This document shows positions 1 to 56,186 of a stretch of DNA of 64,000 bases, in pieces. The stretch is from NCBI GenBank assembly GCA_000708835.1, contig DF237071.1, forward strand, positions 62,001 through 126,000, read 5' to 3'. The notes beneath the pieces are model-generated. The model saw only the letters and a program-made list of their open reading frames with translations, did not search any database and had not been told where the DNA came from. How positions within the stretch are numbered: position 1 is the stretch's first letter; every line of letters starts with the position of its first letter. A program made the position numbers and the translations under genes. The stretch comes from Klebsormidium nitens. Lineage: Eukaryota; Plantae; Klebsormidiophyceae.

Positions 1-581
1 TGCCACCGGCTGAATTGCACATGCCACACATGATCGAATAATGGTGAAGCATCGCTCCGACAGAAGAAGTTCTTCAAAGGCCTCTGTCCTACTTTTGTTG
101 AAGACTTGACTTCAGGATTGAACCAATGGTCAGACGCGACCGAAAATGTTAAACACAAGATTTCAAGCCTGGTATAGAAGGATCAACGGGCAGCGCACAA
201 GCGCAGTTCCCACGCAGCTGGTTCTTGAGTTGGATCTGCTGGCATGGTTGAGTCGGTTTCTCGCCAATTCATGCAGGCACCTTGCCGTTGACCATACACG
301 ATAACATGATTGGGAATCCATGCACGATCTTCCACTGCCACACTACATCTCGAATCGAATCAAGCTACAAGCGATGCCACGCATGCAGAGTGCAGAACCT
401 GGCCAGCAGGATGTGTACGCAAGCCGAAGTACTCACATATACATCCGTGTCAAAGCAGCACGTGCGCCAAAAGCACCTTTGCACACGATCAGGCATGTAT
501 CAATCACGCGGGAGGAGGAATCGGGACTGAATGGCTTGCTTTCAGCATTCGATAAAAAAACGTGATGGTGGCATGGGGCCT

Positions 582-5591
<5,010 letters not shown>

Positions 5592-14760: not shown

Positions 14761-16209
14761 CAGATGGAACTTTAGATGAACAACGACTTTAATGCTTGTG
14801 CGAGTGTCGTCAGATTGTGTAAGAAGGTAGACTCAGCGTTTGCCAATGTCTTTGCTTGGTTGTCGGGGTATGTGCTATTTCTGTTGTTGCAAATATCAAA
14901 GTTAGAGAAACACATTTGCAGAGCCGTTCTGAACGCCAGGACCACAAGTGTCTGAAGTCTGACTGAATTCAATGCGCCTCTGGAGATTAATCAGTATGCA
15001 TGCCATCCAAATTGCACAGGCGCACTGCATATATGATTGTCTTTTGTGAGGCCGGGCGGCTGCTTAAGTTACCCAGCGAATGCTCACCGTTGAGTGCCTT
15101 CAAGCATGCGAATGAGACAGATTGCCAAAGTGTTGCATCTCGCAGGCTGTCCCCTGAGTATCGGACATGCTGGGGACAGATTAAGCCTGCCCTCGATCCG
15201 TTATGCTCTCAAAAAATTATATGTCCGAATCTTGAATGTCAGGATATAAGTGAGATTGAACCGTTCAATGTTAACTTGAAGTTCAACCGACTCAATGCCA
15301 GGCAACCGTCCAGGTTTCAATCGGCGAATAATGCTCAGCGCACCCGGCCGCCATCGCGTACACAAAATCAAGCCATGCGCCATGCATGATGCATCTGGCA
15401 CCTCTTATCCAACATCGATCTGGCATCACATGCACTGTATAAAGCAATGATTATTCTTCGATCGTTACACATGGCATACGACCATACATTCCACCGCCGC
15501 CACGACGTACCTATCACGAATTGACTCAGTGACATGTTTGTGCATGCCGGCCGCTGAGCAGCTGTCACTCAAGCGCTCAATCAGAGGCTCTTAATTAAGT
15601 CAGCTGATCGTCAGTGTCACTATCTTACTAAAGTTGTCACGCACATGATATTCGATCTTGTACGCGAGATCGGTGCAGTGCAGTCAATGCACAGGCTATG
15701 TTGGGTCCGATTGCTATACGCATCATCGATCACTCATTCAAACCTTCTGAGACAAGCATGGTTCCGACCATGCCATGCATCCGGCCAACGGCTTGGCACG
15801 TACCGCAGAAGGATACTAAAGTAATGAACACTGATGTAGCAAAAAGTCCACAGAATCAATGGGCGCTAGCTTAGCAACCCTCTTGGATATCTCTCGATCA
15901 GCGTATACGTACGTACTGCCCAAGAAAGAAAGGGCTTACATCGGTCACTCGACCCACTACGGGGCTAAAGTCTAGCAACATCTGTCGGGCCGGAACGACA
16001 CCTTTCACTCGACAACCTCCACGGTGCTACAAGTCTAGCAACATCCGGGAACGACACCGCAACGGCTCTAGTGCGCAACGACTCTAATGCTGAGCAGGTT
16101 TTTCCCCAATACTTGATGGGGCCCAGTTATCAAAATGAAGTCGGCCCCTCCACCATCCTGAATTTCCAATTAGCCCACTAGGCTAAATCCTGCAGCCCAA
16201 CTGGCCTAG

Positions 16210-19200
16210 CTAATGCTGAGCAAAATTGTCCCAGTACTTGATGGGCCCCAGTACAACGGCGGACGACGGCGCTCCTCCGACGTTGAACGTCCGCAGGACC
16301 TCGAGCGTGTCCTGGTGGTACTCCTCGACCGCTGCCTTCTTGGGGATCATCACGAACAGCTGCAAGTCCACCGAAAGGACCCGAATCAGTTGCTAGCGAC
16401 GTAAAACCTTGGAAGTTGCAAACAACCGCTCCTTGCGATTAAAAAAACTCAGAGATAGCTAGTGATTAAAGGCGTTTGATTTCTTAACATCGTCGTCCGA
16501 CCGACATCTTGTCTGTTTTCTCTACATCTTGTGTGTTTCTCTACGATGTGAAAAGCACTACTGCCGGCGTGTTTGTTTGTTGCAAGCACTGGGAAAAACA
16601 GTCATTCGAAAGAAAGCTGAGGATCTGCATGCAAAAAACCGGTTGAAGGCTCAGAGCTTGCACGACAAAACTCAAGCACTCGATTCGGTCTGAGTCAGCG
16701 GAGCTTACCCTCCCCAGCCCGACTTGCACCGCGGGCCAGACGTCATCAGAAGTATCGAACGCCGTCGAAAGATCGCCGCTCAGAACGCCGGTCACGCGAC
16801 GCATTTCGGCCCCCGTTCTGGGGTTCAGAGTGATCAGGGTCCCGTTCTCGCCCGCCGTTAGCACAGCCAGCAGATCGCCCGCCGGATCAAGAACTGCACG
16901 AGGAAACAAAGCGCATTGTCTTCAGTTCCAGCATCACCCGAGTTCGAGCCAATCTCGTTAGCTAGCGCGTGCGCAGTGGGAGAAAGCGGTTTGTCCGAAG
17001 CTGGTCCGAAACCGGTTTGAATGTAAAACACCGGTCCGAGCCTGGTCCGAACGCTTCGGAAACCGTTCAAGACCTGTCCGACGTCGCCATGAACCGCACA
17101 GCAGTTTGGAGCGCGTATGAACCAGGTTCGGACAAAGAGTATTCTGCAGATTGGTTTCTTGAAAAACTTCTCAGCTCTTACTGCTAGCTTCTCATGAAGG
17201 TATCAACCAGTTACAACGACCTCAGACACGTGCAAAACCTTGGATGAGCTCCGGAACGTCACATTGTGGATATAAAGTGTTGTTTTTCTAGGCACGTGTC
17301 TCCGCTTAGGACACGTAGAAGCGCGCTACGTTCAGCTAAGGACGCGCCAGACTCGGGACGGAATGTGTCGCCGGGACTGAATCGAGACGCGAAGGAAGTC
17401 CTTTAACGTTTTCTTTTGCTTTTGAGTCCAAAAGCTATGAATCCTTTCATGCATGCAGACGTCCCCGTGCAACGTTAGCGCGCTTGCGTGGAAAGGGGAG
17501 AGGCCGTTCATCTCTACAGTGGCTGACGTTGAATGCTGATATTGTCCACCTGCGTTGATGACTTCCCCCTCGGTCGTTGCATTGACCACAAGTCGAGCCT
17601 CCCCAGCCGCTGGATCAAAGAAGTGGATCCCGATCGAGAGGTAGTCAGGAGGCGCGCCGTAAGAGACCCCAAAGAAGGTCGAGAACTTGCCGCTACCAAT
17701 GACCTCGTAAGCGCGGACGTTCAGAGGCAAGGGGATGCTCTTGTGGGTGAAGTTGTCCGGGGCTGCATTCAAAAGGAGGCAGCCATCAGCTTTTGAATGT
17801 GGAACGTCGTCTGCAATATCTACACGGAACGGCCTGTGTGTTGCGTATCGTGTCACTTTTGATAATTGTATGGAGCTCACAGGCAATGGAGGAAAATCAT
17901 AGAACTGCCAAGGTGATGAGCGGTATATCTGGTAAGGATTAAGCTTTCGATTGAAGAGATCCTCTAACAAAGCATCAATCACTCTGCACCCGTAAGTACT
18001 ACCCGTATCCCGGCCAAACTTAACCCCCGGCGTCCCACTCGATTCTCATTGGGCTTTGTCACTAAAGCGATCTAAATGGATATTCTCGGGTGATGATAAT
18101 TTGGAACGAACTCCAACTGCAATTCCAAGACAAGGCGCGAGCGTGTTAAGTACCTGTGTATGATATCACGAGTACCGAGCCGTTGCAGGCGAAAAGAGCA
18201 TCTTTGCCGTTGGTCGCAGTTCCATGAAGTTCGGGGCAAGCAGTTCTGGAGCGGTTGTACACAACGGTCCCGTCCGTGTTGTATACCTGCATATGAGCGG
18301 ATTGTCAATCAGCCTGGTTTTGCAGTGCTAGAATTTGATTCGATAGAAGCACTACAAAGCTTTCCTCCACTTTAAAATGAGCAGACTTTGCCAAGCAAGT
18401 CCTAAAAGCATGTGCGTTGTCAATTTCTAGTCTTCAATCGACTGGGCGTTTTTCAATAGTCTTCAATCGACTGGGAGTTTTCAATCTGAATCGCAACTTC
18501 CAAGAAGCTGCCAGTTTACTCGTCAACCGACCACATAAGGAGGTCTTTCATTCAGCAGCTGGATGACTCTCATTTGAATTCCCACCGAAAAAGACAGGTT
18601 GCTAAACTGATTTTGGAGCGGGGGAAAAGATGACTTATGCACTTATTCTTCCACTCGAACTGACAAGTTGCTGGGACCATTTAGAAGCGGGAGCGCAGCT
18701 GTAATCCAGCGAGGGAAAATTTGAGACTCACCTGAACGCCTTGAGCCAAGGCGACTTCCTCGTCGTTAATGGCAGACTGGTTAACGTAACCAATGGCGAA
18801 AAAGTCTTCTGACAGGGGCGCAACGAACCCGTGCTGTCGGTCGCTTTTGATGAACGTGGGCGAGTAGGAGGCGTTGCCAAGCTGCCTCTCGTCAATGATG
18901 CAAGCTCGCCCCTCTGGAAACGTGCACAGAGAAAGGCCGTCTGTCAGGGCTTTTAGAATAGGGAGAATGCTTGAAGTGCTGGGGTCCCAAATGGAAAAGG
19001 TAGACAGCTGTTAAGACGAGAACAAGGAGACGTGAACAGAGACGGCAGGCTGTCAGGACGCAGAAAAGGGTGACTGCCTGAGGTGATGCGGCTCCAAATG
19101 AAAAAGGTAGAAAGCTTTTAAGTAAGCACTTCCAAAGAGATAAAGGAAAGGTGCACAGAGAAAGGCCGTCTGCCAGAAATCGTAGAATAGGAAGTTCGCC

Positions 19201-21299
19201 TGAATTGATCCGGCTCCAAACGGAAAGGTGAAACAACTGTAGAGAGACTTCCAAAGGAACAAGGAAACTTGCACAAAGAAAGGCCGTCTGTCAGGACGTA
19301 GGAAAGGGGGATCAACCAAAGTGAAGCGGCTCCGAACAAACCAGTGAAACAGTTGTTCAGAGACTTCCAAAGAAATAATAATACGGGCACAGAGAAAGGC
19401 CGTCTGTCAGGATTTGTGGGAAAGGGCGATCGCCTGAATTGATGCGGCTCCAAAAACAAACGTTGAAACGGCTCTAAAGGGACTTCGAAGAGAACAAGGA
19501 AACGGGGCACAGAGCAAGGCCGTCTGTCAGGACTTGTGGGAGAGGGCGACTGCCTGAATTCATGCCGCTCCAAACAAGAACGTTAAAACAAGTACTGAGG
19601 GAATTCCAAAGAGAACAAGGAACGTGCACAGAGAAAGGCCGTCTGTCAGGATTTGTAGAACGTTTTTAGGTTTGTCGCTTCAAACGGGAAAGTGACACAG
19701 CTGTTATGACACTTCCAAAGAGAACAAGGAACGAAACAACACCGCCGTTCTTTGAGCTGCGGTACACTGCAGGAAGTAGTCGCTCCTAACCAAACCTGAT
19801 TAAGGAGGCACTCAAATTGAGCAGTGTATCAGTCTGTTGTGTTCGAAGGGTCATTGACCCGTTGCTTAACCCGGCTCAGTTAGGTGTTGGTTTGCATTGC
19901 GACTGCTGAGCTAGGCTGCAAGACACGGTGAGCTTGTTTCTCACCTTCGTCAAAAAAGATTGCTGTGATAGGCCCAAGCGTGGCAAAGTTGCTTGGTGAC
20001 GTCACATCGAGGGCGAAGTCACTCAGACCCGGTGTCGCAGTCTGCTCGATGGACCATGCCCCTTGGTCAAAGCCTGACAAAAGGGAGCTGACGTCAGGTC
20101 TGTCAGGCCACGTCAGCTGATCAAGGTGATGCGCGTTCGAAAGACACAAGCGCAGCGGATCTTCATCCAAGATAACGAGAGACAGTGCGAAACAATGGCT
20201 ACTAAAGATGCGGGTAGTCGTCAGAAAGTTGCACCAGGGGTCCTATGTACTCAGCAATGCGGAAGGTTACTAACCTATCTCGTAGTTGCTGTCGTAGACT
20301 GACGTCAGGTTTCCGTCATACTGCAGGAAGATGGCGTAGCGACCGCTACTGGTGGTAAAGCCAGAAGCGTACGAGTCTGCCAGCTGGAGTGTGTCGTTGA
20401 CTGATCCACTCGCCAGGTCGAGGACTGTCACCTGCAATCAGAATTTTGGTGATGCTGTTTAAAGAGTAGATGAACTTCAGAGCAGAGCGTTGAGCTGAAA
20501 CTTGGCCGGAGGTTCTGCGCGCGCTGCTCGCGGGCACGGACCGCATCGTCCAGGAGATTGATAGCGTGGAGTACGGCCTGACGGACATTCAGAAGTACTA
20601 CGCCAGCACGGGGGCTATGAAGGCCGCCGCCGAGACGCTGCGCGACGGCAAGAAGGTGCGGCCGGCCGGACAGTGATATGGTTAGAATACGCATTGAGTC
20701 AGTTCGAGCCAGCGGCTACTGCCATGGGCAGTGCAAAATTTTGCCTTGATTATGCATTGTTGGATGAGATTTCCAGCTAGTGTTTATGTGTAGCAGGAGT
20801 CTACATGCATGAGAACTGTGAGTTTTACGTGAGGACAGTGTTCCCGGGTTGCAATCCAGGTTGAGGCAGGATTCAAACAAAGCGCAACACCTCTACAGGT
20901 TCAAATTTGAAAAACTAGTTTCACTTTCACGGCGTCGGAGTGTTTCCAAAAACCGCTGATTGAGTCAAATTGCTGAGATTTGACATTTAGCTGAACTAAT
21001 AATATTGCTGAAAGGAAAGTCAAAATCCCGCAACATCACTCATCGTCTTGTGCTTGCGGGCAAGGTCTTTAATGAGACCCATACAAGCCGTCAGGTCTGC
21101 AGCTTACCTGGCCCTGTGTTTCGCCATCAATGACAAGCAGGTAGCCCTGAATGCCTTCAGACGCAGGTCCGCCCAGGGCAAGGCTCGAGTTTGTCGCCTG
21201 CTGAAGAAGGACCCTAGCAACAGTGTTTCGCGGCAAGTAGGTCACAAAGATAAGGCAGACAAGTGCGGGAAGTGCGCGGAGCGCTATCTTCGAAGCCAT
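16210..21299 (-). CDS. Secreted beta-propeller protein, AztD (zinc metallochaperone)-like, 446 aa
   Basis: Exons 21108-21299, 20275-20431, 19945-20073, 18732-18913, 18154-18286, 17550-17762, 16709-16893, 16210-16359. All GT-AG, phases consistent, total 1341 nt. Signal peptide MASKIALRALPALVCLIFVTYL. Ordered motifs match my recollection of AztD: VTVLDLASG, SGRYA, IFFDE-G, QHGFVAP, GVQVYNTDG, CPELHG..FACNGSVLV, PAVQVGLGRLFV, GGAPSS, terminal His. The gene model is more secure than the family name. Confidence 0.8.
18915..19735. repeat. About 7 decayed tandem copies (110-120 bp) in intron 3 of the AztD-like gene
   Basis: Core ACAGAGAAAGGCCGTCTGTCAGG at about 18926, 19036, 19155, 19273, 19389, 19509 and 19628. 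On the gene strand the core reads CCTGACAGACGGCCTTTCTCTGT, i.e. the branch point and pyrimidine tract of the exon-4 acceptor. Confidence 0.9.
20506..20655 (+). pseudogene. Isolated 150-bp fragment of a magnesium chelatase subunit H (ChlH/BchH family) gene, antisense within intron 1 of the AztD-like gene
   Basis: Translates to PEVLRALLAGTDRIVQEIDSVEYGLTDIQKYYASTGAMKAAAETLRDGKK, matching the ChlH-family segment QEIDSVEYGLTDIQEYYA. It is GC3-rich and followed by a donor-like GTGCGG. No other ChlH exons were recognised in the window. Confidence 0.85.
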
Positions 21300-21900
21300 G
21301 GGCACTGCTCTTGCAAAACCCTTACTAGCTCTCCGCCGGAAAGTTTTGGGAGTTGAACCACGAGGGGTTGCAAAGAGATTCCTGGACTTCAAGAATCTGC
21401 TACAAGAATGAGCGGCGCCGGCCGTGCTATATGAAGCCGGGATATGTGCTGTAAGAAATCATACAGAAGACTGGCCCCAAGTTGTCTAAATAGCTTCTTA
21501 TGGACGGCTTCGGAATATTTTAGATTACTCAAAGGCAAACCTGCATAATTACCTTATCAGGAGTCTACCAACTCAAGCAGCGTTTGAGCGTTCGTGGGTC
21601 CGAGGGAAGAGCGGCCGCTGTTACCACGTTCTGAGCGACAAGTGAGTCAGTAATTCGGTTTGTCTGAGTACTCTCGGGTTTGAGTCGAGCCAGGTTTAGA
21701 TACAATCCTGGAACCGGGAGGACGCACCAAACAAAAGTCTTTGTAGATACAAACCTGCTCCGCTCCCATACCACCCTAGCTAACCCCAAAATCCAACCCC
21801 ATCCGCCGACCTCTGGCGTACATCCTCAACCTGGCCGTATCTCAACCGAAGCCTTCGTACTACCGTACTTGCTTCTGCGTCCTTTCACTGCCGCCCTGTG

Positions 21901-21910
21901 ATGTCGACAC
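21901..21910. promoter_or_regulatory. Perfect zinc-deficiency response element (ZDRE) consensus match ATGTCGACAC
   Basis: Matches RTGTCGACAY exactly, about 600 bp upstream of the AztD-like ATG. A partial TGTCGAC core occurs near 21978. Function is untested. Confidence 0.45.
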
Positions 21911-22415
21911 GACCAGTTGCGGGGAATTGACGCTTCTTGATGGAGCGAAGCTGGTGTGGGATCAGGATTCTGGATGTTGTCGACCGTGTGTCCGGCATGC
22001 GACAATCATGTGCACCGGCGCAAGGCGCGACGGTATGATGGTTTGACAAACGCTCCGCACTCGCAGTGAAATGCATTCATGAGTATCATATCGCCTCGTC
22101 TGCGACGCACGCTCACACCATCATATCGCCGCAACTGCAGTGCCGTGAGGATCTACCGTTGCTACGCAAGAAATGTTGTCAGATACGTAGTCCGTACGTC
22201 AGCCGGAAGGCGGGTGGCAATTCGGCACCCACCGTCGAATTACCACACGTGTCCACACGATGTCCGCCGGCCTGCCGGCGGCAGCCGCATTGCCGCGGCA
22301 GGCGTACGGATCGGTAAGTTCTAACTTCACACACCGTTCTTCACGTGCTGACGTATCCGTCGCCGATTCGTCGGTTCAGTCTCGGCGGGTCGGCGAATGT
22401 ACGGTCCGGCTGGGC

Positions 22416-22750
22416 NNNNNNNNNNNNNNNNNNNNNNNNNNNNNNNNNNNNNNNNNNNNNNNNNNNNNNNNNNNNNNNNNNNNNNNNNNNNNNNNNNNNN
22501 NNNNNNNNNNNNNNNNNNNNNNNNNNNNNNNNNNNNNNNNNNNNNNNNNNNNNNNNNNNNNNNNNNNNNNNNNNNNNNNNNNNNNNNNNNNNNNNNNNNN
22601 NNNNNNNNNNNNNNNNNNNNNNNNNNNNNNNNNNNNNNNNNNNNNNNNNNNNNNNNNNNNNNNNNNNNNNNNNNNNNNNNNNNNNNNNNNNNNNNNNNNN
22701 NNNNNNNNNNNNNNNNNNNNNNNNNNNNNNNNNNNNNNNNNNNNNNNNNN
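22416..22750. other. Assembly gap (335 N) with very GC-rich, hairpin-prone flanks
   Basis: Direct observation of the N run. Confidence 0.99.
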
Positions 22751-25171
22751 ATGAGCGTGGTGTCCTCAGATTGTTCATCCTTTGCCCGGCCGATGCGGGC
22801 GTCTTCTTTCCTCGGGGACTCTCGAGTCTCATATTACTCCCCCGCGGCGGCCGCCGACCGGACACGGTCCTCGAACTTCGGAACTGTTCGGCGGCCGCGC
22901 CACGTCGTCTCGTGCGTCTCGCGGCCGGGCGCCCGTCGATCCTCATGTCGCTGGCCCACCAAAGCCCTGTCGGAGCCTCAGCTTCTTGCAAGCACGTATC
23001 TTCCCATCATATATAGCTGCATAGCGCATCTAAGAGCTTACGGCAGGCACTAATGATCGTCCGTAAGCACTTAGTAGGCTGCAGCCGGCCGGGCGCTGTC
23101 ATGGTCCGTGTCGCCTGGCAAGAAGGGCCCAGGACGTACGCACGACTGCTAGTCGTTTTGCAGCTTGGCGTAACTTCACTTCAAAGACTCTTGATCAGCC
23201 CGTTCGGTTTCCTCTACTTTTGCACTGTACTTCACGATTTAGATTGATCGCGAGTTGAGGGGCTGGTTGAGTCGTGGCCGGGTTACGATTTGGACGCAGC
23301 GTCGGGCAGGTTTGCATATTGGCCAGATGCCGGCGCCGGCGCAAACCTTTAAGGCTGAAAAGTTGGCGCCTTCCTCGACGCCCGTGTCCTATCCGCGAGT
23401 CAAATCTCATGTAAGATGATGGGGTATTAAAGAAGCCAGATCAGTTTCTCGTCCTGCCAGTAATCATGCGAAGATTCGTGGACGTGGGGTTGTGAAGAAA
23501 TTTGTGTGATGCTCGTAATCAGCCGGTCGAGAGCAAGAGGCGGGCATGAGTCCTGCAATCAGTACCTGATTCGACGCCTAAATGAGGGACTCGAAACAGA
23601 TTCGTTCGTAGGCGAGTAGAACCTCCAAATGTATCTGCGGATCACGTATGCACGCCCCCTGATTCGGATGAATCTCTTCCGGTCGTGTTGACCGTACAGA
23701 CCAAACGTTCGTAGCTCTGACACTACTAGAGGCTCAAGACGGGCTCTAAAGGAACCCTGATTAGCCGGTAACCTTTGAAGATAATGAACACGCGGCAACA
23801 TGCTGGGACTCTGGTACAAACATCAGCGGATGCAGACTTAGCAGCTTGGGGCTCAAGATGCAGCACTTGCCCTTTTCAAGGACCTTTCGAGCCCTGTTAG
23901 AACCTACGACCAACCATAATAGATCATTGGATCATTTCCACAAATTACCGAATTTATACCATGAAAATGGAGAGCAGAACCTCTCTGACACAACATGCTA
24001 AATGGGTATACTTTCCTTTTTCGATTAAAAAAATTGCAGAATGTGTGAGCCACGGCCGGCTTCTTATGCTTGAAAGTTAGCAGCTACCTTGGAGCGAGCT
24101 GTTTATGAACCTTCACTGGCAGAAAGACGATTCCGCAAAATGGGTAAACGGGCTTCTCAAACGGCCTTGAATGAGCCGGCCATATATGTAGCCTGATCAT
24201 CACACCATGCAAGGGACGTGGAGGCAAACAAAAAAGCCTTGGTCGCAAATGATTACGTCTCCGCCTCAGCTACAAGACGGGCATGTAGCCATTCGTGGGA
24301 GAGTCCCAAACCAGCTTTCTGATATATACTGATACTTGTGACCGAGTACGTCCGAGTCTGTGGATGAGTAGTCGTACGGTCGCGTGAAATTAGCCCGCGA
24401 TAGCTAGTGACCGTGATCAGTAACCATAATTCAAATATAGGAGAGCCTTGCATCAGCTCAGAGCTTCAGAGAGTTTCGACGCCATCAAAGTGGCCGCGCT
24501 TCCGATAAATGAGCACCACACTGGGTCTACATGAAGTTCTTGGACCTGTCCTTGCTCTAAGTAACTACCTAACGTTCTGAGTCAAGTCTTCTTCCTCGAC
24601 ACAAGCCTCTGGGCGTCCTTTGCGAAATCTAATGTCACGGAACCCACCAGAAGGACGCAGCCAAATACTGCACAAAAAAGTAAGATTGATGTCAGTGCTC
24701 CAGCAAACAATCGTACATCAATTCGTAGTTCACTGAAGACCTGTTGTTCACATCAAATAAGAAGGACTTTTCCTATAGAGATTCAGGCACGTCCTCAGGC
24801 ATCACACGTTGCCAATCTCGTTTCACACTTTTCAGAGGAAAACCCTCCGCGTAGACTGCACCTGGGTCGTTCCTTCCCCTACCCTCACGTGAAATAGTGG
24901 AAAATCTGGCCCATAACCCTCGCAGAGCAAAGTTGCTGACGCTCTCGAAGCCCCTTTGAAATCAAAAGGATAGTTCATGCTGAAATTCACTGTAAGACTG
25001 ATCTTGCACTCAACACAAGAGCTTACGGTCCTGCAACAGAAAGCTCAAATGCCTGTTACAGTTTCAGAATGTGAAAGACTGTGCATATATCAAGGTTCTC
25101 GACGCGTCATCATCATCAGCATTGAGCAACATTTATGCATAATCAAGGGAAATCAGCCTTGTGGGCCAGAT

Positions 25172-26946
25172 TCACTCACGAGAAACCCAGAAGATGGCAA
25201 ACGACATAGCGATGCCCCAGTCTTCGTCCAAGCGGGACAGCCAATTTCCTAGGGATGCGTGTGGCGCGCTTGTGTAGCAGTCAATGCACGTCGCTTCGAT
25301 ATCGTCTGCGGAGTATTCCTTCCCCGCGCAAGGGCCCTCCCCGTCGTCAAAGTACCCAATTGTGATGTTGAACTTCCTGAAAGAGCAGCTCAACGCCTCT
25401 GGTTAGAGCAATTTCGCAAATGACTTTCAACGATATAAACACCGCGCGCAGCGTAAGGAAGCGCCTGGAAAGACGTATTCTTGCAAAAAATCTTCTGACG
25501 CAAATCTTCAAAGCCTAAAATGCAGAAGCGTAGAGCAAGGACCAGCGAGATCTCATCGTAGCTGTAGTCCACTTGGCCTGGCCCCTACGAACAATGGGGA
25601 ATGCGGACGGTTGACAGATCAGAGCAGCATAAATTCTGCCAGTTTAAATCGAGAGTTTGTAGGACCGGTGGACCGCAAAGTCACTGTATCCCTCAGGAAG
25701 ACACGAACACATCTAGGCTGCCTGGGAGGTTATCAAATCAACATGTCAGCACTTTACTTCTCTGATTTTCTCTTTTTTGAATTTGACTTGACAGCTGTAC
25801 AACGGAGACTGTAGCAACTGCCTGCCATGTTAACAGGCTCTAAAGGACAGTGATGAGATCACAGGGTGTCTCCTCTCAGCAGGCTCTTGGCAGCGTCAAC
25901 TTACTTGCATACTTTGAACGCTGACGCCATGGGGTAGTAGGTACGGTCTTCGAACGCAGAGAACCAGGCAGCATACGTCTCGTCACAGAAGCAGTTGCGA
26001 GAGGGCATGGGTGACTCCGGGCCGTAGAAGTGGGCCAGACCCTGGCAGCAGTCTTCATCTGGAGCAGGATCATGACGAGAACAGGTCAGAAGCTCAGTAA
26101 TACACTCGGGAAAACTGATCGTCTATTCCTTCAAAAGTGGTAGAAGTCGGTCTGGCAGAATTATTTTGGTAAGGCTACAAGCAGGTTGCGTCGCGTCAAC
26201 ATGGAATCCCAACAATGAGCAGATTCAGAGCTGAGATGTCCCTTCTGTCAAGAAACCTCTACCATGAAAGGGGGTCAACTTGGAGCTAGCAGCCGGATAA
26301 TCCTGCTGCTACTAGTGCATTCACTGGGCTCCAGCTCGGAGCTGCAAACTTGGCCACCTTAGTCCCTATTTGACCAGAAGAGCACAATTTTTACGAATAC
26401 CAGCTCTCTCGTGGCTGCTTCAAGAGTGTGCAATCAGGAAATCTGATTGCTCAATCCGTTTGAATATCGAAAGTATTCTGTACGGTCCGAAGCACATACA
26501 CAAGTTCAGCTTTCAACAGAATAAATGTCTGCTGCCATATGCCCCCCTCCTCATACTGCATCTGCACAGCCGGCGCATAAGTGGTCAAAATAGCTCAAAA
26601 TAACCTGGAATATCTCGGCTTGGCTGTAATCTGGAAGAGATGAGCGGAAAATTGGGCTGGTCTGAAATCAAGAATGTCCAATTTGTGTCTCACCTGGGTC
26701 TTCATAATGGAAGAACTTCCGGCTGCAGCTGCGATAATGGTACGTCAAGCTGTGGAACACCTCTTTCGTGCATGCATCTGCCACGTTGACAGGGGTCTGT
26801 AGAGCTACGGTTGCATTTGCGGCGGCCGGTGCGGCAGCACTGATTTGTGCGGCAGCCAAGCTTGGTAGAATTAGTGCAACAAACACGTATAAGGCTGCCG
26901 ACAGCGCGAAAAGAGAGACGCCCCTGGTTGGGCGTGAGCTAGCCAT
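25172..26946 (-). CDS. Secreted cysteine-rich protein with an eight-cysteine-motif-like pattern (C..C..CC..CFC..C..C), about 203 aa
   Basis: Exons 26694-26946, 25905-26058, 25172-25376; phases 1 and 2 are consistent. Signal peptide MASSRPTRGVSLFALSAALYVFVALILPSLAAA. Cys core DACTKEVFHSLTYHYRSCSRKFFHYEDPDEDCCQGL...NCFCDE...KVCKKFN...GPCAG...TCIDC. Hydrophobic tail WGIAMSFAIFWV. Confidence 0.7.
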
Positions 26947-27108
26947 TGGGACGATACGACTAGGCTCTAGTTGGGTCGGCAAGGCAAATTAGGTTCGAGC
27001 GTCTACAGAGGTGCTTGGGATCCTTCTAGTCCAGCGCCCTTAATCTTGGACCGCCGCATTCTCAGATTAACCATTGATCGTCTCATGTCAGTGATCTCGC
27101 AGCTCTAC

Positions 27109-27415
27109 GTACACTGAAACCAGCTTCTACAGAGCTCCTCGTATTACGGAGTAAGGAATTCCTCTACAAGCGTGGTGGCGAGCTGGCTGGCCAAAGTCCT
27201 GCGACGTAGGTGGAGGCTACCTCTCCGGCACCTTAAAAGCTACCAGGAGCCTCTTACATTGGTCCCACATTGGGTACTTTATCCAGTGAGTACCTTGGTA
27301 CTAGTGTACGTTGCGTACCTATACCTCGTTAGTGTACACGTTTGCGATCGGGTGGCCTGATTGGATCCCGACGTACGGACCCGGTTCTCCTTCCATATTT
27401 ACCAGTCGGTCGTAC
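27109..27415. promoter_or_regulatory. Dense GTAC cluster (candidate copper-response elements) in the 8CM/FRO divergent spacer
   Basis: GTAC at 27109, 27274, 27290, 27298, 27306, 27315, 27334, 27373 and 27412, i.e. 8 within 142 bp. Several more occur between about 27576 and 28310. Confidence 0.45.
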
Positions 27416-27673
27416 GGACGAGTGGGTGGGCCGCGCCCGGCGGGGGGGAGTCGGCGCCGCGGGACTCGAGTCCGGATTCCGGAACTCCGGGTTGTTACCG
27501 GAAGGTCGGTATGTCGATCGGTATGGCCGGCCGGTAAAGTCGGCAGCTGGATTCTAGAAACCTTTGAGGGCCCCGGTACTTTACCACCACGGCCCGGGCC
27601 GACACGGAAGTGCGAGGTCGCCCGGCGTTGCGCCGTGCGGCGCCGAGAAGTTCCTCCGAGTCGACTTTGACCG

Positions 27674-27712
27674 GGCCGGAAAACAGGCCGCCGGGCGGCC
27701 TGTTTTCCGGCC
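27674..27712. repeat. Perfect 39-nt palindrome (19-bp arms, 1-nt spacer)
   Basis: GGCCGGAAAACAGGCCGCC-G-GGCGGCCTGTTTTCCGGCC. Confidence 0.95.
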
Positions 27713-28518
27713 ACCGTATGCAGCCAGATCGAGTGGGCCGACGGCCGAGCTAGGCGCGCCCCAAAGTATGTCACTCTCTAGTGCCCGGCCACCAGGGCTA
27801 TGTAACATGTTTATGTGTACACGTTTGATTTCAACATCTCCGGCACGGCTCCTGGCCAACACAATTTGGGCGTCGACCTACACACTCCGACACATGACCC
27901 TTGTACGTCATCCATTTTCCGTTCACGGACCATGCAATCATTGCAAGCGGCCGATTGTTCGGCGCGTGGCCAACGTGAGATATCGCAGGACGTCCTCATC
28001 TCTATCCGGAAGTACGCATATCTTGTGCAACAAAAATCTGACGCCCAACAATATGCCAGTACTAGGTACCACTAGAAGTGATAGGCTTCTTTCCTACTCT
28101 ATACAATTGTCGTCCAAGGCTTGATTCAAAGAGCTACTATGGCCTACGACAGGCTTCTCCAAACTCGAAAAGCTGAGAACTACCTACACGGGCTACTTGG
28201 TCAATACCGCGACGGAAGTGACAGTAGCTCGACTCTAACCAGCTAAGAACGCATACCTATTTAGGTTTGAAAATTATCAGAAAATTCCTACCACATACCT
28301 ATGCTGCGTACATTGCACTTGCCCGAGCACTTCTCTTGGCAGTCTCCTCGCCGCCCCCACCGCTGGCAGCACCACAAATTAAAGTTTAGTCACAACCTCA
28401 CGTTTATCTAAACAAGCATTTCCAAAAACAGCCACGCGAGAACCTGTCATCTCAGTAGCTCCCTGCGCAGACGTTGGCAGTCCTTATCACCAACGGACGC
28501 GTTCGGCTGGTCCGCAGT

Positions 28519-31500
28519 ATGGCGGGCATCGAGGGGAAGGTCTCTCCTCCAAAGGAACGCGCGGGGGGTCTGCTTTTCCTGTGCGGTATGCTTCGCTTAG
28601 TGCTGTTCGCAATCGCGTGGGCGTGCGTGTTCGCGTTCGTCTTCTGGACTGTGGTTTTTAACCTGCCCAAGTGGTCATGGGCTTACCAGGAGGGCGACTT
28701 GTGGCAGGACATGCGGACTGCCCTCAACCTCAAGTGAGGAACCCACACTGATAGCTGTTCTTTCGGAAGGCCAGATAGGAGAGTTCTGTTCGGGTTGAAG
28801 AAGAGCTTCCTTCTTTTTTGATCATACTCCATGAGTAATCTACTGCTTCTAAGTTTGTCAGAAAGAGTATTTGGAGACATGTTGACGTGGCTGTCACGTT
28901 GCCTTATTACATTCTGCTGCACAGCTGTCTTCTTGCATACATACTCAACTATATGTTGCGCGCTGCTAATCGTTGGCGTTTGGAGAAAAAACCTTATGAA
29001 TTCACTACTAGTAGGGGTGAAGTGGAAGGTACTCAGTGAGCGGAACTCAGTAAGTGTTCCATTTAGCACCACTAAGGACCATGCTGCCCTTGCTTCACTT
29101 AAAAAATGCTTTCATGCAAATCTGGTTTTTCTGTCAAACCTCTGTAGGGGCATTGTTAAACCAGTAAGGCTGATGAATTAACTGAACATCAAGGCCAGCT
29201 AATCAAGACATTCTTGTGCGATTCTGATGAGCCCCAAGTATCGCACGCGGCACTTCCATGTATGAGCCTCACTGTAAGCAAAAGGGAACAATAATTGCTT
29301 AAGACCTTAAGGGCGCCGTAAAAGCATTTTTGAATTTATCGATGAGACTACGGTGCACTAACCCAGTGCACTACCCCTGGGTTTCTGTGCAGGAACCATA
29401 TGATGGAATCAGGGCACTTTGTTGTGGCTGGCTACGACGCCCAGATGGTGATTCTCGGCGTGCTGCCCCCCTTTGTTGCCGCGGTCTGCGTTTCTCTCGC
29501 CCGGCTGCTCCCGAAGAAAGAGAAGACGCGGGCAGACTACAAAATCATGGTCCTTGGACAAGCCGCCCATGAGGGAGTCGAGTGGGTAAGGAGTCCTGAC
29601 TTTCGTTTTTCAGCAGGCTTATGCCTTGAGCGCGAGTGCTTCTCACGGAACTCTGCTGGCAAATAATTTGTTTCTTTAGTTGCTGCTACAACAATACTGG
29701 TTCGCGAGCGCATTCACCAGCAGTGCTTCTTCATTCTGGTGCTAGGGACAGCGGAATAGCCTGAGGTTCACACGCGCTTCAACCAATGCTTCTGTTGCAG
29801 TATGGTAGCTGTTAAATGCGAAGATACTAAAACTTCCTCTGCATCACTTCATCAAGGAGGCCGTCAAGTTGCACCTCCTTGCCTTTACTTTTCTCCCGCC
29901 TGCTGGACTAAGAAGAATGAGTTTCTGTCGTGCAGGTCCGGCGCAGTTTTGTCTGGCAGATCCCCCCCCGCCGCTTTTGGCTCTGGTGGTCATCTGGCAT
30001 GTCATTGGGCGAATTCCTATTGGTGTTTGGCTGGATTGCGCTCCACTTCATCTGCTTATGGAGCCACAAGATCAACAGCTGGGGTCAATTCGACGCTTGT
30101 AAGTCACATTTTGTCTTTCAGCCCTACTATATCTGGCCTTTATGAAGCCTACCAAGCAGTCCAGAACTAGTCAGGGCGGTCTTTTTCCTGGATCATTTAC
30201 GGCGGGCCAGCCTAGGCGGAAACGAGATAGCTGCATCCTTCAAGTTCCTCGATTCTGGACTGCTGTTGAGAACCTTCCCATCTCAGGTGATATAACGCCC
30301 TTTCTTGGAAATGCCCTTCTCGAGCTGCTTTGCCAGGCAGTGCTGAGTTGCTTAATTTGCCCGTGTCAATCTGCAAAGGAACACCTGCACCCGCTCTGAT
30401 CCAAACGTCACTAGCAGCTGCAGCCTCTTGTACTGTAGTGCAAACCGGCATTCGATGACCCCTTTCTACAAGTTGTGGGCTGTGTGCTGCGCAGGCCGCT
30501 AACACAATGATTGCAGTGAAAGCAGGCTACAGCACTTCGGTAGCTCCGGCCTAAACTCCATCCTCCTCGAACATTCTGCAGGGGACGAACTAGGTCTGTA
30601 CTACAACGTACCCAAAAGCGTGTACGCCCTCGATAAGTGAGTCATGCCGATCTCACTGACGTTCTATCGGGCTCTGCATTTGCCAACGTCGAGTCGAACG
30701 TTTGCCCATTGACGAACCTCTAGATCGATCTAAGGTCACTTCAGCTGAGTTGCACATTGCGCGCGTGTATTACAAGCCTGCCAGTGTGACCTGATCGATC
30801 AGCCGTTTTGCTCCATCTGACGAAATTTGCCCTGCTTCTTTACAGGATCGCCATTGCCTGGGGCTGGATTCTGTACCTGGATTTCACGCTCCTGTTCTTC
30901 CCGATCTCCCACAGCTCGTTTCTGAACTACATGTTGGGCATCCCGTTCCCGCACCTCGTCCGCTACCACAGGTGATTATGTCATCTGATTCAGACCATTG
31001 TTTTAAAGAAAAAGTGGAGACACAATGTTCTACATTGACGGGATCGTTTTTGGATCCCTGAGAGCTTTCACCTTCTCTTTTCTGAGACATCGACTACTCA
31101 GCATCCCACGCCTTGAATCTGACCGGGCGCGTTTTCAAATGCAGACGGAGTATGATGAGATGGATAAAGCGCTATGATTAAATACAACTCCGGACGGCCT
31201 TTGACAGTGGCTACCATATTCATTTTGAGCTGTGAGTGCTTAATCAAAAATCTTCCGCGGTCACGGATGTGAACGTCTGAAGCAAGACGTGGGCAGTTCT
31301 GGAAGATAGGGTCTGCAGCAAAGACCGCTCAAGGTTGAAAACAACGGCACTCAATTTCATCTTCCTTGCAGATGGCTGGGCCATATGGCTATGTGGTCTT
31401 TGACTGCGCACGCTCTGTTCTACTATCTCTATTGGACAGCCAATCCCGAAATCAAGTGAGTCGACATACCTTCTCTCGAGTTGCTCGCAGTCCACCTGTC

Positions 31501-34500
31501 ATCACCTTGTCATCTGCAAACGGCTCTTTGTGAAAGTAAGGAATTACTTATTGCCGAGAAATGACTGTCGAGGTCTGACGCCCGTCTCTCTCTCGAGCTC
31601 CACTAGCAGTCGCAGATCCACGGGAAATAGCGTGCAAGATTTTGAGTGCGTTCAGATGTCAAAAACGTCCCGAGCTTTCTACGAAACACGGGGTGACCAA
31701 ATACAGGCCGCGCCCTTGCTGTTTGTCAACTGACGTTATTCAATTCAGCTTCGTGCACGAGTTCTTCGACTGGGGCCAGCGCTACTTCATCAATCTCTTG
31801 GCCGGCTCCATCTCCTGGATTTTCGGCCTCGCGCTCTGGATCACTTCCCTCGACTGGATCCGTCGCAAGTACTTTGAGGTAAGCGCAGGTGTTCCACCCC
31901 TGTTTACCAAATATCCCGAAATCTGCCCTTGCGGCAAACACAATCACTCCTTTTGACGCGTCTGACCAAAACATTGCATTAGATTCTTAACTTTCAACAG
32001 CCAGACTCGTGGCATGTACTTGATTTAGATATCCAATTGTGTTCAAGTCGCGCTGGATGTATTTTGTGCACCGGAGATTGAGACTGCTCTTCACCTGCCA
32101 GGGGTGTCAATTTTTGACTTCTTTCATGGCTGATATGCAGCTCTTTTACAAAACACATATCGTCGGATTCGTGGGCTTAGTGGTTTTCGCCCAGATGCAC
32201 TACTACTGGATGTGGACCTGCTGGCTCCCAGGTAAGCAAGCTTGCCCAGAGTTAGGACGGAAACGGAAACGGAAACGGAAACGGAAACGGAAACGGAAAC
32301 GGAAACGGAAGCGGAAGCGGAAGAGGAAGCGGAAGCGGGAACGGAAAGGATTGTAACTCTCTAGAAACAAGCTAGCTGTGCAAGCTTAAGTAGCTTGACG
32401 TCCTTTGGCTGACTACCCAATCATGACGTCAAACACTTCAAAAGGAAGTGTGTCTGCCATGTCTTGTACCAGACCTTATCAAAAGAGCAAAATCACGGTC
32501 GACGTTGTCTTCTGGGTTCCTACAATCCTCGAGACTCAGAAGCAACTCTCAAATCCAGTGCACAAAATGCTCTCTTGCAGGTCTGCTCCTCTACGCGGCC
32601 GACCTGGCGGTCCGGCTTTGCCAGATCCAGAACACGTCGACAGCGATCGCCAAGGGCGTCTGTGAGGAGGACTCAGTCGTCATGATCAAGCTGTCGGTTG
32701 ACAAGGTAAGCTGCCGGGTTAGACACAACCACTTCGCTAAAAAAACAGTGGTGAGAAACGCGCTCTTTTAGCTGCTAGAACAGCTTCATCAAGTAAAGTC
32801 GATAGGGATGGGTCGTCTACTACCTGATGAAGAAGTTTGCACGTTCCCTTCGTCGTTCTGAAATATATCTGTAAAACTCACGCTCGTCTGCCACTCCCCT
32901 TTCATTTCTCATCATCAAAAACCTGAGACAGTGGCCACCAGGGGAAATTTTCACTTCTTTTGACGAATATCTGACCGATGCTGCTTGCCCCACTTTTCTC
33001 ACTGCTTGAGTACCCTAAACACAATTTCACTTGCGCACATCCTTTTGGCTTCTTGCGGCGTCCTTCGCTGCGAAGCACCCCATACTTACTGAGCCGCTAT
33101 TCTAGGGCCCACACTTTAATTGCTTACGTACGTGACTCTGACGTAAAGTTACACGTGGTCCAATCAGATATGGGTCTGTCTGTGCCTGCAGAACATAAAG
33201 CTGGCCCCACTCCAAGACATCTTTGTGGCCTTCCCCGACATCAGTCGCTGGCAGTACCACCCGTTCAGCATCGCGAAGGCCGAAACCTCGTCCGCTTGTC
33301 CGATGGAGGGCAGCAGTAAGGAGATACTGCTGAGCATGAAGCGTTACGGAAAGTGGACGTCGGTGAGTGCGTCCGAATGCGCGCGCGCACGAGGAGAGCG
33401 GTGCTGTTTCTCCTCCACAGGCTGTGACCGGGTTTATTCCTGACGTTTGAAAAGACGTGCCTTGTAGTGGAGATTTCGCTTGACCAGACACCTTTTCTCG
33501 TCCGAGTCTGACTTAGGACCAGCCTTTGCCGCTGTCTAGAATCTCCAGCACTGGGTTTGACACATTGCTTGGACTGCCAGTGGGCCCCCATGCGCCGTTC
33601 CGTCGTGATTTTGGTCAAACCTCTTCGTCGCGGTCAAAGCTCTGCGTCTCAGTCAGTCTTTCTCTTAGGCGGATGAAAGGTGCCATTTCTTCATTTTCCT
33701 TCTTCCAGGAAGTCATTGACCGCTTAAAGAACGGAGAGGTACTCGCGGTGCGGCTCAGCGGCCCGTTCGGAGGCGAGACCTCCTTCCAGTGGCGCAAATA
33801 CGACGTCGTCCACCTCTACGCTGGCGGAATCGGGGTGAGAACCTACGACCAAATTCTCCTTTTCCCTTCAGTATGTATGTCCTTGAGGCCTCATTGGATA
33901 ACGCCCACAGGATTTGATTCCACTACGTACATTCGAAAGTTCTAGAACCGTACCAGATGCTCTGTGTTTATGCTTGGCGGACTTCGGAGAGGAAGGACTC
34001 CAACTCGGTGTCACGTCAGCGCAAAGGACTCATCTATCTCATGCGCGCGATTTTTATTTTAAGACTTCAATCTTGTGCCACCAAGTTAGCGCGAAGGAAA
34101 TTTGGGATTGCACAGGAAGCCGTGGGTCTATCTACAGCTTTCAGGTACTTCCACAGAGCTGCAGTATGTTGTTCAAACTTCATCCGGGCGCCCAGATTTC
34201 ATCTCTGATATTGCACCTCTCCACAGGTCGTCCCGCTCATCTCCCTCCTGCAAGACATGCTGTCCGCGCGCGCGGCTGGTTCGCCGGATGACGTACCTGA
34301 GCGGGTGGTCCTGTACTGGTCGGCCCGCCACAAGGCGGAGTTCCACCTCCTAACCAAGGACATGGCTGCTGCAATACAGTAAGAGCCTTTCGAGACTTGA
34401 TCTGAGGCGTATGTAATTTGGTAAGGAGTCCAGGAATTATCGTAGAAGCTTTGTCCTCACCGTTCAATTGGGCTTTCCTTCTTTGCTTGTCGGATCCATT

Positions 34501-37268
34501 TGCAGTCAAGATGGATGTCGCGTTACCACACCCGCTTTTAGAACTTAAAGCATATTGAATCTGGTAGAGAATCGACCGTTTATCTCTCTAAAGGCTTGTC
34601 TGTCATGCTTTATCCGGCTGCCTTCTCTGCTTGTCAGATCCGTTTGCAGTCCCAGCCTAGCTCCACGCTGATCCCAGTGGCCTCGCATCAAAACACCTTT
34701 GGAAGTGTTTTTCAACCTTTAGAAGTGGTTTTCAACCTTTTGAAGTGTTTTTCAACTTTTGAAAAAGGCAAAGAGGAAGTATCTTATCTTATTCGTCCAC
34801 GTGTCCTTCAGGGAGGGTTGGCTCACCATCCGTCTGTTCTACACCGGCAACGAGTCGAAGGAACAGACGGCCAAGCCAAGCTTCAAAAGCTCCAAGGTCG
34901 ACTTCGACATGGGTTCTGTCTTAAACGAGAGGAACGGTGTCGATGTCGGAAACTTCAATAGCGCCCCGGCTGAAGGCCCGCGCGCTGACGTCAAGCTTCC
35001 GGGAGCATCCAGCTTCTTTTGGGATTACGCCAGGTAAAATTTTGACACAGCCCTTTGACTCGCATAAAATAAGGGTTTGGCGAATTTGATGCAATCTGCA
35101 AGTGAATTTTGCTTCTGAAGCCCACAATTTGCTTGGACCGCGCTGCACAGGATTTGGAAAGTTGGTTTGTAAGGTGGATTAGGCTGGCCTGGATGGGTTA
35201 AGATGTTTTTCGTGTAGGGTCCCAGGGTGGGTTAACGTGTTTCTCCTGTAGGGTCCCAACATTGACGGTAGAACCGTTCACACACACGAGACGAATTGCA
35301 CGCAGCATCAAAAGTTTGACATGGCTAACCGTGGTCATCATGGCTAACCCTGGTCATTACGGCTAACCCTGATCAACTCTCGACTCTACAGGCCGATCCA
35401 GCCCAAGTCCTTCAACGAGCTCGAGGCGCTCCTCGTCATCCTGACGACGTGGGTCGGCGGCTGGTGTGGACTCGTCCTCTGCCAGAGCTTCTTTGCGGAG
35501 TATGTGGAGACCTTCTACACGGAGTCGAAGTACTGGAAGGTAAAAGCAAACGACGTTTGCATTTGCAAGCGAAGAAGTGACCAGAAACGCTTATTGAGAG
35601 ATGGTACGCGTCGCTAGATTTTGTACCACTGTGAAAAAAAAAAACCAAGTTTCTCAACGTAGTACTTCTGGTTTCGCTTCTAGGGATAAAGGAGCTGTGA
35701 ATCTCAACAAAGCTCGCTGATTCGCATTGCTGTCGTGGTTTCTGCAGTTGACTCGGGTCTTCTGAACGTGATTCCTAGTAGCTCTTTCTACCTTCTCTGA
35801 GCCCTTTTGTTTTCCCAACTGAACAGTGATCCAGATGAAGATCCCGATCTCGTCGAAAGCCACTTCTGCAAGTGATGCAAGTACTTATGCGAATACTTAT
35901 GCGATGGTGAAAGAACCATCCGTTCTATTTATGCAGGCGGGTCTATTTTACACAGTTCTGCTCTCCGTCATGTCAATCGGGCTGCCAGTGGCTGTGGTCC
36001 TTTTCCCCAGGCACCTCTACAGGTCAGAAATGCACCAAGTTCTGAGTACCTCGACTGACATTCAAATCTCAAGACGGAATGGACTGCGTTTATCAATCTC
36101 GATTGGGTCACGGTGAGAGGTACCTCAATTCAAACCATGTCTCGCCCGGTCTAACCATTGGGCCTGTGTCTGGAGTTACAAGACGAGTCCAGAATTATCA
36201 GTGGACGGTCCGGGAGGCTGTCCGAAACATGTCTGATTACTGTCATTCTGCGCCCGACCTGTGCGGTACGTTCCTGTCTGTTTCAGTCTGACTCAGCCCG
36301 GGGTTCGAAGCGCTCTTCGAGCGAGGTTCAGGACACGTGACCTCTTTCCTGCAGGTATTTGCGCTACAGAAGGGAAGACGTCATCCAAGCGTCACAGCTG
36401 GCGTCCGCTGAGGACGTGTACGAGAGCCCCGACCACCCGTCCGTCGTAAGTGTGCACCTTGGGGCTCAGAAATTGCGCGCGCGCGAGCAGATCGAGCAAG
36501 CTCGACATGTAGAATGGATCAAATAGACTTAGAGCCGTGCAAAGTATTGGCTGTACATATATAGTAAAGGCACACTGACAGGAAAAGCTGGAGAACAGAA
36601 ACGTGCAAATAACGATTCTGCTCTTCTCGAGCCATCCCAGTTGGTTCTGGACGTATTTGACTGCCGTGCCAATTTATTTCTCGTTCACCATTTTTCTTCT
36701 TTTGTTGCCTTGTTGTTGCAGTCTGCCACGAGCGTCAGCTTCAATGAGCTGGGCCTGGAGGTCAACGTCGAGCAGGGGCGCCCCGACCTCAAGAGTGCCC
36801 TCGAGAGCATCGTCACAAATGAGAACGCTTCGATGAGAGTCGCCGTTTGCTGCGCCGGTACTGACTCAAACAGCTCGTTGAAGCTGTCTATACCGTTGCA
36901 TTTTCTCTTTCTACTCCCGCTCTGTGTATGAGAGCGACATGACTGTTCTGAAATGACAATTGGCAATGAATCTTACATCCAACATTTGTTGAGGTCATCA
37001 AAGCGAATCCCCAAGAATGAAGTTGAGTTACAGGAACAGGTCGCAGCCTCTCTGTCTCGAGCGCATACATTTGAGTCGAAGAAACTGGCGCCTAGACCTG
37101 ACCTGGCAGGTAATTTCTTGATTCATGATTCGTGTTTGAGAATCTCGTCTTTGTTCTGCTGCAGGCCCCGAAGTAATGATGAACAACTGCTCGAACCTGG
37201 TGTCTCAACTCAACGGCAATGATAAGGGAGTGTATCTTCAGTATCATCGCCTTGCCTACCAGCTGTAA
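28519..37268 (+). CDS. FRO: Ferric/cupric chelate reductase (FRO family flavocytochrome), about 805 aa
   Basis: Exons 28519-28733, 29393-29585, 29936-30098, 30582-30636, 30846-30971, 31372-31455, 31749-31878, 32141-32231, 32581-32705, 33192-33362, 33709-33834, 34227-34378, 34812-35033, 35392-35539, 35937-36022, 36355-36445, 36722-36857, 37165-37268. Phases are consistent, total 2418 nt. Heme-ligand helices RYHRWLGH..AHAL and YKTH..QMH, FAD motif HPFS, GPFG, NADPH motif AGGIG, GRPDL..CAGP. No EF-hand N-terminus was seen, so not RBOH. Confidence 0.93.
32257..32346. repeat. (ACGGAA)n / (GCGGAA)n hexamer microsatellite in FRO intron 8
   Basis: 9 perfect ACGGAA units followed by 6 variant units. 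Confidence 0.97.
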
Positions 37269-56176: not shown

Positions 56177-56186
56177 TAGTCCTACG

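Follow-up and report, generated by a model that had tools for sequence, protein, structure and literature searches.

Do three neighbouring genes of the alga Klebsormidium nitens, all with products that could be imagined handling trace metals outside the cell, work together or do they only lie side by side? The question is raised by a stretch of 64,000 nucleotides (assembly GCA_000708835.1, contig DF237071.1, positions 62,001 to 126,000; the window from here on). In it, gene A, a relative of the bacterial zinc chaperone AztD, is followed by gene B (8CM2), coding for a protein with an eight-cysteine motif (8CM), and by gene C (FRO2), coding for a reductase of the FRO family (Table 1). A preliminary description had named these three genes, had pointed out a perfect zinc deficiency response element (ZDRE) upstream of gene A and a cluster of GTAC motifs (the copper-related core bound by CRR1/SPL7) in the divergent spacer between genes B and C, and had proposed that the whole is a co-located module for extracellular metal capture and reduction.

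The gene identities were right and both motifs are present where they had been described, but the module itself found no support in our analyses. Gene A is an intact, expressed, intron-bearing nuclear gene and a descendant of bacterial AztD. As read from its aligned residues, it has lost the site from which the bacterial protein passes zinc on and has retained the markers of the scaffold. Our preferred reading, with a probability of roughly 0.55, is that the window contains three ordinary neighbouring nuclear genes, with predicted extracytoplasmic or membrane products, that most likely act independently of each other.

An AztD descendant in a spliced nuclear gene

The structure of gene A is documented by RNA. 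Spliced transcript contigs from four runs, belonging to four studies, were compared with the genomic sequence over positions 16150-21450 and confirmed all seven introns, with no sequence differences (the joints read CT..AC on the plus strand, that is GT..AG on the minus strand, where the gene lies). The stop codon at 16210 coincides with the position at which the preliminary description had the cluster begin. The protein starts with a hydrophobic N-terminus, resembling an export signal, and contains 10 N-x-S/T sequons; it is predicted to enter the secretory pathway.

To place this protein we have used a profile of seven bacterial homologues extracted in this analysis, three of which are annotated as AztD. 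The gene A protein matches it with 106.9 bits (E 5.6e-29 at Z=1e6) from position 26 to position 398 of 407, with 22-28% identity to the bacterial proteins. The AztD model of NCBIfam (NF038015) is matched by exon 5 alone, with E 1.4e-4 for gene A and E 2.6e-6 for the metagenomic relative described below; the cut-off of this model, 400 bits, is meant for the whole protein, and these are scores of a single exon. When exon 5 of the relative was compared with plasmids by tblastn, 81 records were found, some annotated as aztD and one lying within an aztABCD operon of Klebsiella. The AztD ancestry of the propeller, on which the preliminary description had made its proposal depend, is therefore upheld by the full-length profile match and by NF038015, and the homology over the full length suggests that the product of gene A folds into an eight-bladed beta-propeller.

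Other searches were less rewarding. Pfam and NCBIfam scans of the single-exon open reading frame (ORF) pieces of gene A gave no match except for exon 5; a single exon is as a rule too short to score. Nothing was found by phmmer among PDB chains with exons 6 and 5, a degenerate DNA pattern for CP[DE]LHG-x9-FAC had 0 matches in bacterial genomes, and a metagenome scan with an alignment of AztD exon 7 gave no confirmed locus. Neither was there any signal of an ABC transporter or a solute-binding protein among the window pieces scanned, so that the aztABC genes that accompany the Klebsiella aztD reference in its operon have no counterpart near gene A there.

The metal sites of AztD are well established in Paracoccus denitrificans, whose protein we have used as a reference. 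Site 1 consists of H124, H167 and H218, site 2 of H99, H102, D104 and the C-terminal H408, and a disulfide joins C214 to C231; at least 95% of the homologues share the metal ligands, and it is from site 2 that zinc passes to AztC (PMC6689063). We read the states of these residues from the columns of a MAFFT alignment containing gene A, the metagenomic relative and the seven bacterial sequences. The latter have the canonical residues throughout, except for one alignment gap at H99 and one histidine at D104.

In gene A the markers of the scaffold are in place. The two cysteines (C237 and C254) fall in the columns of C214 and C231 and preserve the spacing of 17 residues, the motif CP-x-LHG provides the site-1 histidine H241 (H218 in the reference), a second site-1 histidine, H187 (H167), stands within QHG, and the protein ends with H446 (H408). 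The metal sites are another matter. Within the site-2 hairpin, D119, A122 and S124 occupy the positions of H99, H102 and D104, and Q120 that of the turn residue G100; of the site-2 ligands the C-terminal H446 alone is kept. At site 1, N145 stands in place of H124, leaving histidine at two of the three positions, against all three in 7/7 bacterial sequences. The exon that encodes the altered region (exon 3) is confirmed by RNA and, because the gene A protein has no histidine before residue 187, the loss of site 2 does not depend on the exact register of the alignment. With the hairpin ligands of site 2 and one histidine of the pore gone, the product has probably ceased to act as a canonical zinc chaperone. 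Weak metal binding in the pore is possible, as is the adoption of another ligand.

Taken as a whole, gene A resembles the bacterial proteins of P. denitrificans and Citrobacter koseri (NF038015; PMC6689063) in its full-length homology, disulfide pair, two site-1 histidines, C-terminal histidine and N-terminal export signal. It differs from them in being a transcribed eukaryotic nuclear gene with 7 spliceosomal introns, in the substitutions just described (D/A/S for H/H/D at site 2, Asn for His124), in its 10 N-glycosylation sequons, in the low identity and in the lack of aztABC genes among the pieces scanned.

A glimpse of a less altered state is provided by a metagenomic relative. An exhaustive phmmer search with the exon-6 ORF of gene A against 1.84 billion representatives gave one match (P0001), located on a 42-kb Joint Genome Institute (JGI) metagenome contig, Ga0590114_0004671 (loci L001 and L009). 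This contig bears a whole AztD-like gene with the same eight exons, inferred GT-AG sites and 52% amino-acid identity to gene A, with which it shares a signal-like N-terminus, the cysteine pair (C244 and C261) and the C-terminal histidine (H456). The difference lies in the ligands. The relative keeps H129 (for H102 of the reference), H131 (for D104) and H152 (for H124), besides G127 in the hairpin turn and the site-1 histidines H194 and H248; at the position of H99 it has E126. Its score against the bacterial profile is 159.1 bits. With H129, H131 and H152 retained and a score above that of gene A, the relative marks the gene of K. nitens as the more derived copy.

The surroundings of the two genes are entirely different. 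No FRO or 8CM gene was found in the 14.6 kb that precede the relative's gene or in the 7.7 kb that follow it, and these flanks have no similarity to any of the neighbour genes in the window. The conserved linkage that the preliminary description had looked to for confirmation was thus absent in the one relative compared, which is a distant one.

A divergent FRO-8CM pair and its inverted duplicate

Gene C is, by its family pattern, a plant-type FRO with a putative role as a metalloreductase. Its predicted model takes the first 14 intron sites from their conservation with an annotated paralogue, FRO1, and the 3' exons from canonical sites and the reading frame; every intron is GT-AG and the frame is open. 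The exon pieces match, in this order, the Pfam families Ferric_reduct (PF01794), FAD_binding_8 (PF08022, E 2e-6) and NAD_binding_6 (PF08030, E 4e-3), and FRO1 carries all three as well. Two H-x13-H pairs (H250...H264 and H328...H342) supply the bis-His haem ligands, and the motifs HPFS, GPFG, GGIGVVP and the C-terminal CAGP mark the FAD/NADPH dehydrogenase part. No EF-hand was detected in the two N-terminal pieces scanned and the N-terminal exons encode extra hydrophobic helices, which points to a FRO and not to RBOH or NOX5. A flavocytochrome of this kind would take electrons from NADPH in the cytosol and pass them, by way of FAD and two haems, to Fe(III) or Cu(II) outside the cell, which are thereby reduced.

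The same domain order, haem pairs, dehydrogenase motifs and additional N-terminal helices, the lack of an EF-hand and the presence of GTAC motifs upstream are found in FRO2, FRO4 and FRO5 of Arabidopsis. What sets gene C apart from these is that it is one of two diverged paralogues in an inverted duplication, each standing head-to-head with an 8CM gene. A PDB search with the FAD-binding exon gave only weak matches to the NOX5 dehydrogenase domain (E ~0.7), and a metagenome scan with an alignment of a FRO exon gave no confirmed locus. Two peculiarities of the FRO genes may be recorded here. Intron 8 of FRO2 contains an (ACGGAA)15 microsatellite (32257-32347), which a naive ORF reading turns into a long KR repeat. 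Exon 5 of FRO1 is followed by a GC donor (CAG/gcgagc) at the site where FRO2 has GT (CAG/gtgatt; window 30971), and this intron of FRO1 may be GC-AG.

Gene B codes for a protein in which a hydrophobic N-terminus, presenting as a signal peptide, is followed by C59, C74, C88-C89, C107-x-C109, C135 and C152. This is the arrangement C-Xn-C-Xn-CC-Xn-CXC-Xn-C-Xn-C of the plant eight-cysteine-motif proteins (non-specific lipid transfer proteins (nsLTP), LTPG and the prolamin-like/EC1 proteins). A homology search with exon 2 found a single protein (P0002, 76% identity), which is K. nitens KFL_001220050, the paralogue of gene B, and bears the UniRef name 'Prolamin-like domain'. The likeness to the plant proteins has its limits. 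Pfam scores stay below the gathering cut-offs, at 16.1 bits for Tryp_alpha_amyl with gene B (cut-off 21.7) and 17.6 bits for LTP_2 with the paralogue (cut-off 22), and the 8CM exon found no usable match in the ESM Atlas. Three cysteines are additional, one of them in the anchor helix, and the C-terminus is neither free nor a glycosylphosphatidylinositol (GPI) signal; it consists of a 25-residue hydrophobic segment and a basic tail. Because of this segment and tail, a membrane anchor is predicted for the product, which would be a type-I protein whose LTP/prolamin-like domain faces outwards. The earlier statement that all three genes encode secreted or membrane products agrees with our predictions, with the correction that the protein of gene B does not seem to be freely secreted. 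An early gene B model that used a GTACCA donor was dropped, the splice sites conserved with the paralogue being preferred.

That paralogue belongs to a second FRO-8CM pair, situated directly to the left of the window. We have examined it in a stretch of the same contig (L010; GCA_000708835.1, DF237071.1) that overlaps the window, L010 13297-21020 being 100% identical to window 1-7724. The pair itself occupies L010 1-12656 (DF237071.1 48705-61360). In it FRO1, annotated with 794 aa, stands head-to-head with 8CM1 (KFL_001220050), and the pair is inverted with respect to the one in the window. Nucleotide identity between the exons of the two copies is 70-94%. Together they bracket about 25 kb, containing a ribosomal L7Ae-type gene, a methyltransferase gene and gene A. 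No AztD-like sequence was found at the FRO1-8CM1 locus. Since the duplicate lacks it, the recurring unit is FRO plus 8CM, and gene A adjoins one copy only. Genes B and C form a divergent pair, duplicated as one block. The place of gene A beside them is best explained by this segmental duplication together with rearrangement, and hardly as a product of selection for a module.

The two 8CM copies have not fared alike. A 13-nt length difference between L010 10863-11101 and window 25877-26102 shifts the frame of 8CM1, and the NCBI annotation has here a truncated protein of 114 aa and a separate gene of 102 aa. A decaying paralogue and a mis-annotation are both possible.

Motifs in the spacers and the readings of the locus

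Eight GTAC motifs crowd into 142 bp of the spacer between genes B and C, and five of the eight share 46 bp, whereas the maximum in 100 first-order Markov simulations was 5 per 150 bp. Its distance from the start codons is 328-469 nt for gene B and 1104-1245 nt for gene C, upstream in both cases. The array, to which the preliminary description had pointed for its copper-related core, is non-random, but such clustering is not specific to the spacer. A second island (55328-56971), with tight groups at 55389-55442 (within 55328-55442) and 56187-56241, is equally dense, with 12 GTAC in the bin 56001-57000. Pfam scans of the ORF pieces around it and of the flanks detected only the methyltransferase and P-loop ATPase listed in Table 1, with no recognisable gene near the island. 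Nor is the tight array conserved between the two FRO-8CM spacers, which cannot be aligned; the one between FRO1 and 8CM1 has 13 GTAC in 1.8 kb.

Three of the eight motifs fall within, or at the repeat border of, a GC-rich segment in the spacer that is bounded by the 13-nt direct repeat GTGTACACGTTTG and is, because of this repeat, a possible insertion with a target-site duplication. It contains a perfect 19-nt inverted repeat or hairpin (27674-27712) and has no second copy in the window and no Rfam or tRNA match.

The pairing of FRO with 8CM invites a reading in which these two genes are coupled through a shared bidirectional promoter, possibly regulated by SBP-domain proteins through the GTAC array, with the AztD-like gene as a bystander. 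The divergent arrangement is found twice, GTAC motifs are concentrated towards the 8CM gene in either spacer (8 within 142 bp for the window pair, 4 within 115 bp for that of L010), and the frames of FRO2 and 8CM2 are both intact. Yet duplication of a block copies neighbours regardless of any coupling, the spacers are otherwise unalignable, and with its 13-nt indel and truncated annotation 8CM1 does not give the impression of a pairing that has been maintained. We know of no functional link between FRO and 8CM proteins. We regard this coupling as possible, with something like one chance in four's worth of plausibility, and hold it as a tentative alternative.

The zinc side of the proposal depends on the ZDRE upstream of gene A (ATGTCGACAC). 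One perfect match to RTGTCGACAY in the window compares with a mean of 0.17 in shuffled sequences, 17 of 100 shuffles having at least one, and matches with one mismatch number 7 against 6.05 expected. The element is therefore at chance level in the window. The F-group bZIPs (F-bZIPs) that bind ZDREs have been reported from land plants only, in studies in which Klebsormidium was not among the taxa examined (PMC5476651, PMC9643250). Another perfect ZDRE (ATGTCGACAT) occurs between FRO1 and 8CM1, at L010 9112-9121, with flanks unrelated to those of the first. The locus of the metagenomic relative has none.

The three genes could also be seen as a co-regulated extracellular trace-metal island, with the AztD-like protein capturing metal in the wall space, the FRO reducing it and the 8CM protein assisting, under the control of ZDRE-binding and SBP-domain (CRR1/SPL7-like) factors. 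The correct gene identities, the predicted location of all three products, the ZDREs upstream of gene A and between FRO1 and 8CM1 and the non-random GTAC array are in its favour, as is a precedent in Arabidopsis, where FRO4 and FRO5 are SPL7-dependent and have GTAC motifs of their own (PMC3968747). We nevertheless consider the island unlikely. Gene A has parted with its site-2 ligands and one site-1 histidine, FRO and 8CM recur without AztD, linkage is not kept in the relative, the ZDRE is at chance level and a second GTAC island exists, all of which makes the module reading weak. Besides, gene A adjoins genes B and C as assembled, across an assembly gap. Still less probable is the full version, a genuine apoplastic metal island, responsive to zinc and copper and made of a remodelled AztD propeller, a surface FRO and an anchored 8CM protein, in which the ZDREs by gene A and in the FRO1-8CM1 spacer are functional. 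If true, it would mean that a zinc-deficiency circuit based on the ZDRE predates the origin of land plants.

Several observations weigh against independent neighbours as the explanation. To meet an AztD descendant beside a FRO gene by chance would, a priori, be uncommon. The Asp, Glu and Asn residues that stand where the ligands used to be could yet coordinate metal. About 77 kb contain two ZDREs, each within a 5' spacer of the genes concerned, against an expectation of about 0.2, which is suggestive but post hoc. Finally, the GTAC array is clearly non-random, and the FRO1-8CM1 copy has its own four GTAC near the start of 8CM1.

That the adjacency is a scaffolding error at the gap, produced by the nearby inverted duplication, is suggested by the position of the gap, only about 1.8 kb from where the duplicated block has its inner boundary (near 24.5 kb). 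The flanks of the gap are unique and non-overlapping, however, and 79-99% of the stretch of gene A (a figure for this stretch only, not for the gap) is present in four DNA-like runs from the source sample; we consider such an error improbable. The distance from the gap is 1.1 kb to the ATG of gene A, on its upstream side, and 1.8 kb to the stop codon of gene B. The gap interrupts no gene and, being intergenic, affects no reading frame.

Table 1. Positions of the genes and other features in the window (position 1 is its first nucleotide).
Feature	Position	Strand	Remarks
Gene A (AztD family; predicted secreted propeller)	16210-21299	minus	ATG at 21299, stop 16210-16212; 8 exons; 446 aa
Gene A exons	21106-21299, 20274-20429, 19945-20072, 18730-18913, 18154-18284, 17550-17762, 16709-16893, 16210-16359	minus	From spliced contigs
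Gene A exon 3	19945-20072	minus	Counterpart of the bacterial site-2 hairpin (H-G-x-H-x-D) and site-1 His124; reads D119-Q-G-A122-W-S124, N145
Gene A exon 5	18154-18284	minus	Conserved AztD motif C237-P-E-L-H241 ... C254 (disulfide pair and site-1 His)
Tandem repeat	19018-19658		116-120 bp units, about 5 copies, 74% match; in the 1031-nt intron 3 of gene A, spliced out of transcripts
ZDRE-type palindrome, perfect	21901-21910		ATGTCGACAC; 602 nt upstream of the gene A ATG; sole perfect match in the window
Assembly gap (run of N)	22416-22750		Intergenic; the promoter of gene A on one side, gene B with its 3' end on the other
Gene B (8CM2)	24582-26946	minus	ATG at 26946, stop at 24582; predicted 4-exon model, 229 aa
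Gene B exons	26694-26946, 25905-26058, 25180-25376, 24582-24667	minus	Splice sites conserved with the L010 paralogue
GTAC array (8 motifs)	27274, 27290, 27298, 27306, 27315, 27334, 27373, 27412 (27274-27415)		Divergent spacer of FRO2 and 8CM2
GC-rich segment (470 bp)	27345-27814		Direct repeat at 27332 and 27815; whole 27332-27827
Gene C (FRO2)	28519-37268	plus	ATG at 28519, stop at 37268; predicted 18-exon model, 804 aa
Gene C exons 1-9	28519-28733, 29393-29585, 29936-30098, 30582-30636, 30846-30971, 31372-31455, 31749-31878, 32141-32231, 32581-32705	plus	
Gene C exons 10-18	33192-33362, 33709-33834, 34227-34378, 34812-35033, 35392-35539, 35937-36022, 36355-36445, 36722-36857, 37165-37268	plus	
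PrmA/PRMT-type methyltransferase	9212-9694	plus	Flanking gene, not metal-related
P-loop ATPase	37726-37893	minus	Flanking gene, not metal-related

Elsewhere in the window, the region of the L7Ae-type gene contains an internal direct repeat of about 170 bp with 75-83% identity (2395-2793). On the plus strand at 58106-60431 there are cysteine-rich ORF pieces that start with the signal-peptide-like MARALFALLLLSALALSSA and resemble another secreted cysteine-rich gene, with no Pfam match. Rfam and tRNA scans over 15-38.5 kb found nothing.

Consequences for the AztD family

As an idea about gene clusters, the case is a cautionary one. The identities and the motifs were persuasive, yet the residue states, the structure of the paralogous pair, the locus of the relative and the shuffle controls give the module no support. 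What is new is gene A, a spliced and expressed eukaryotic descendant of AztD with a product that is predicted to be secreted; AztD has so far been described from bacteria only, and no eukaryotic case was among the papers listed in our literature search. Together with the copy of a related alga that has kept its ligands, gene A would offer a natural experiment on the repurposing of a transferred bacterial metal chaperone.

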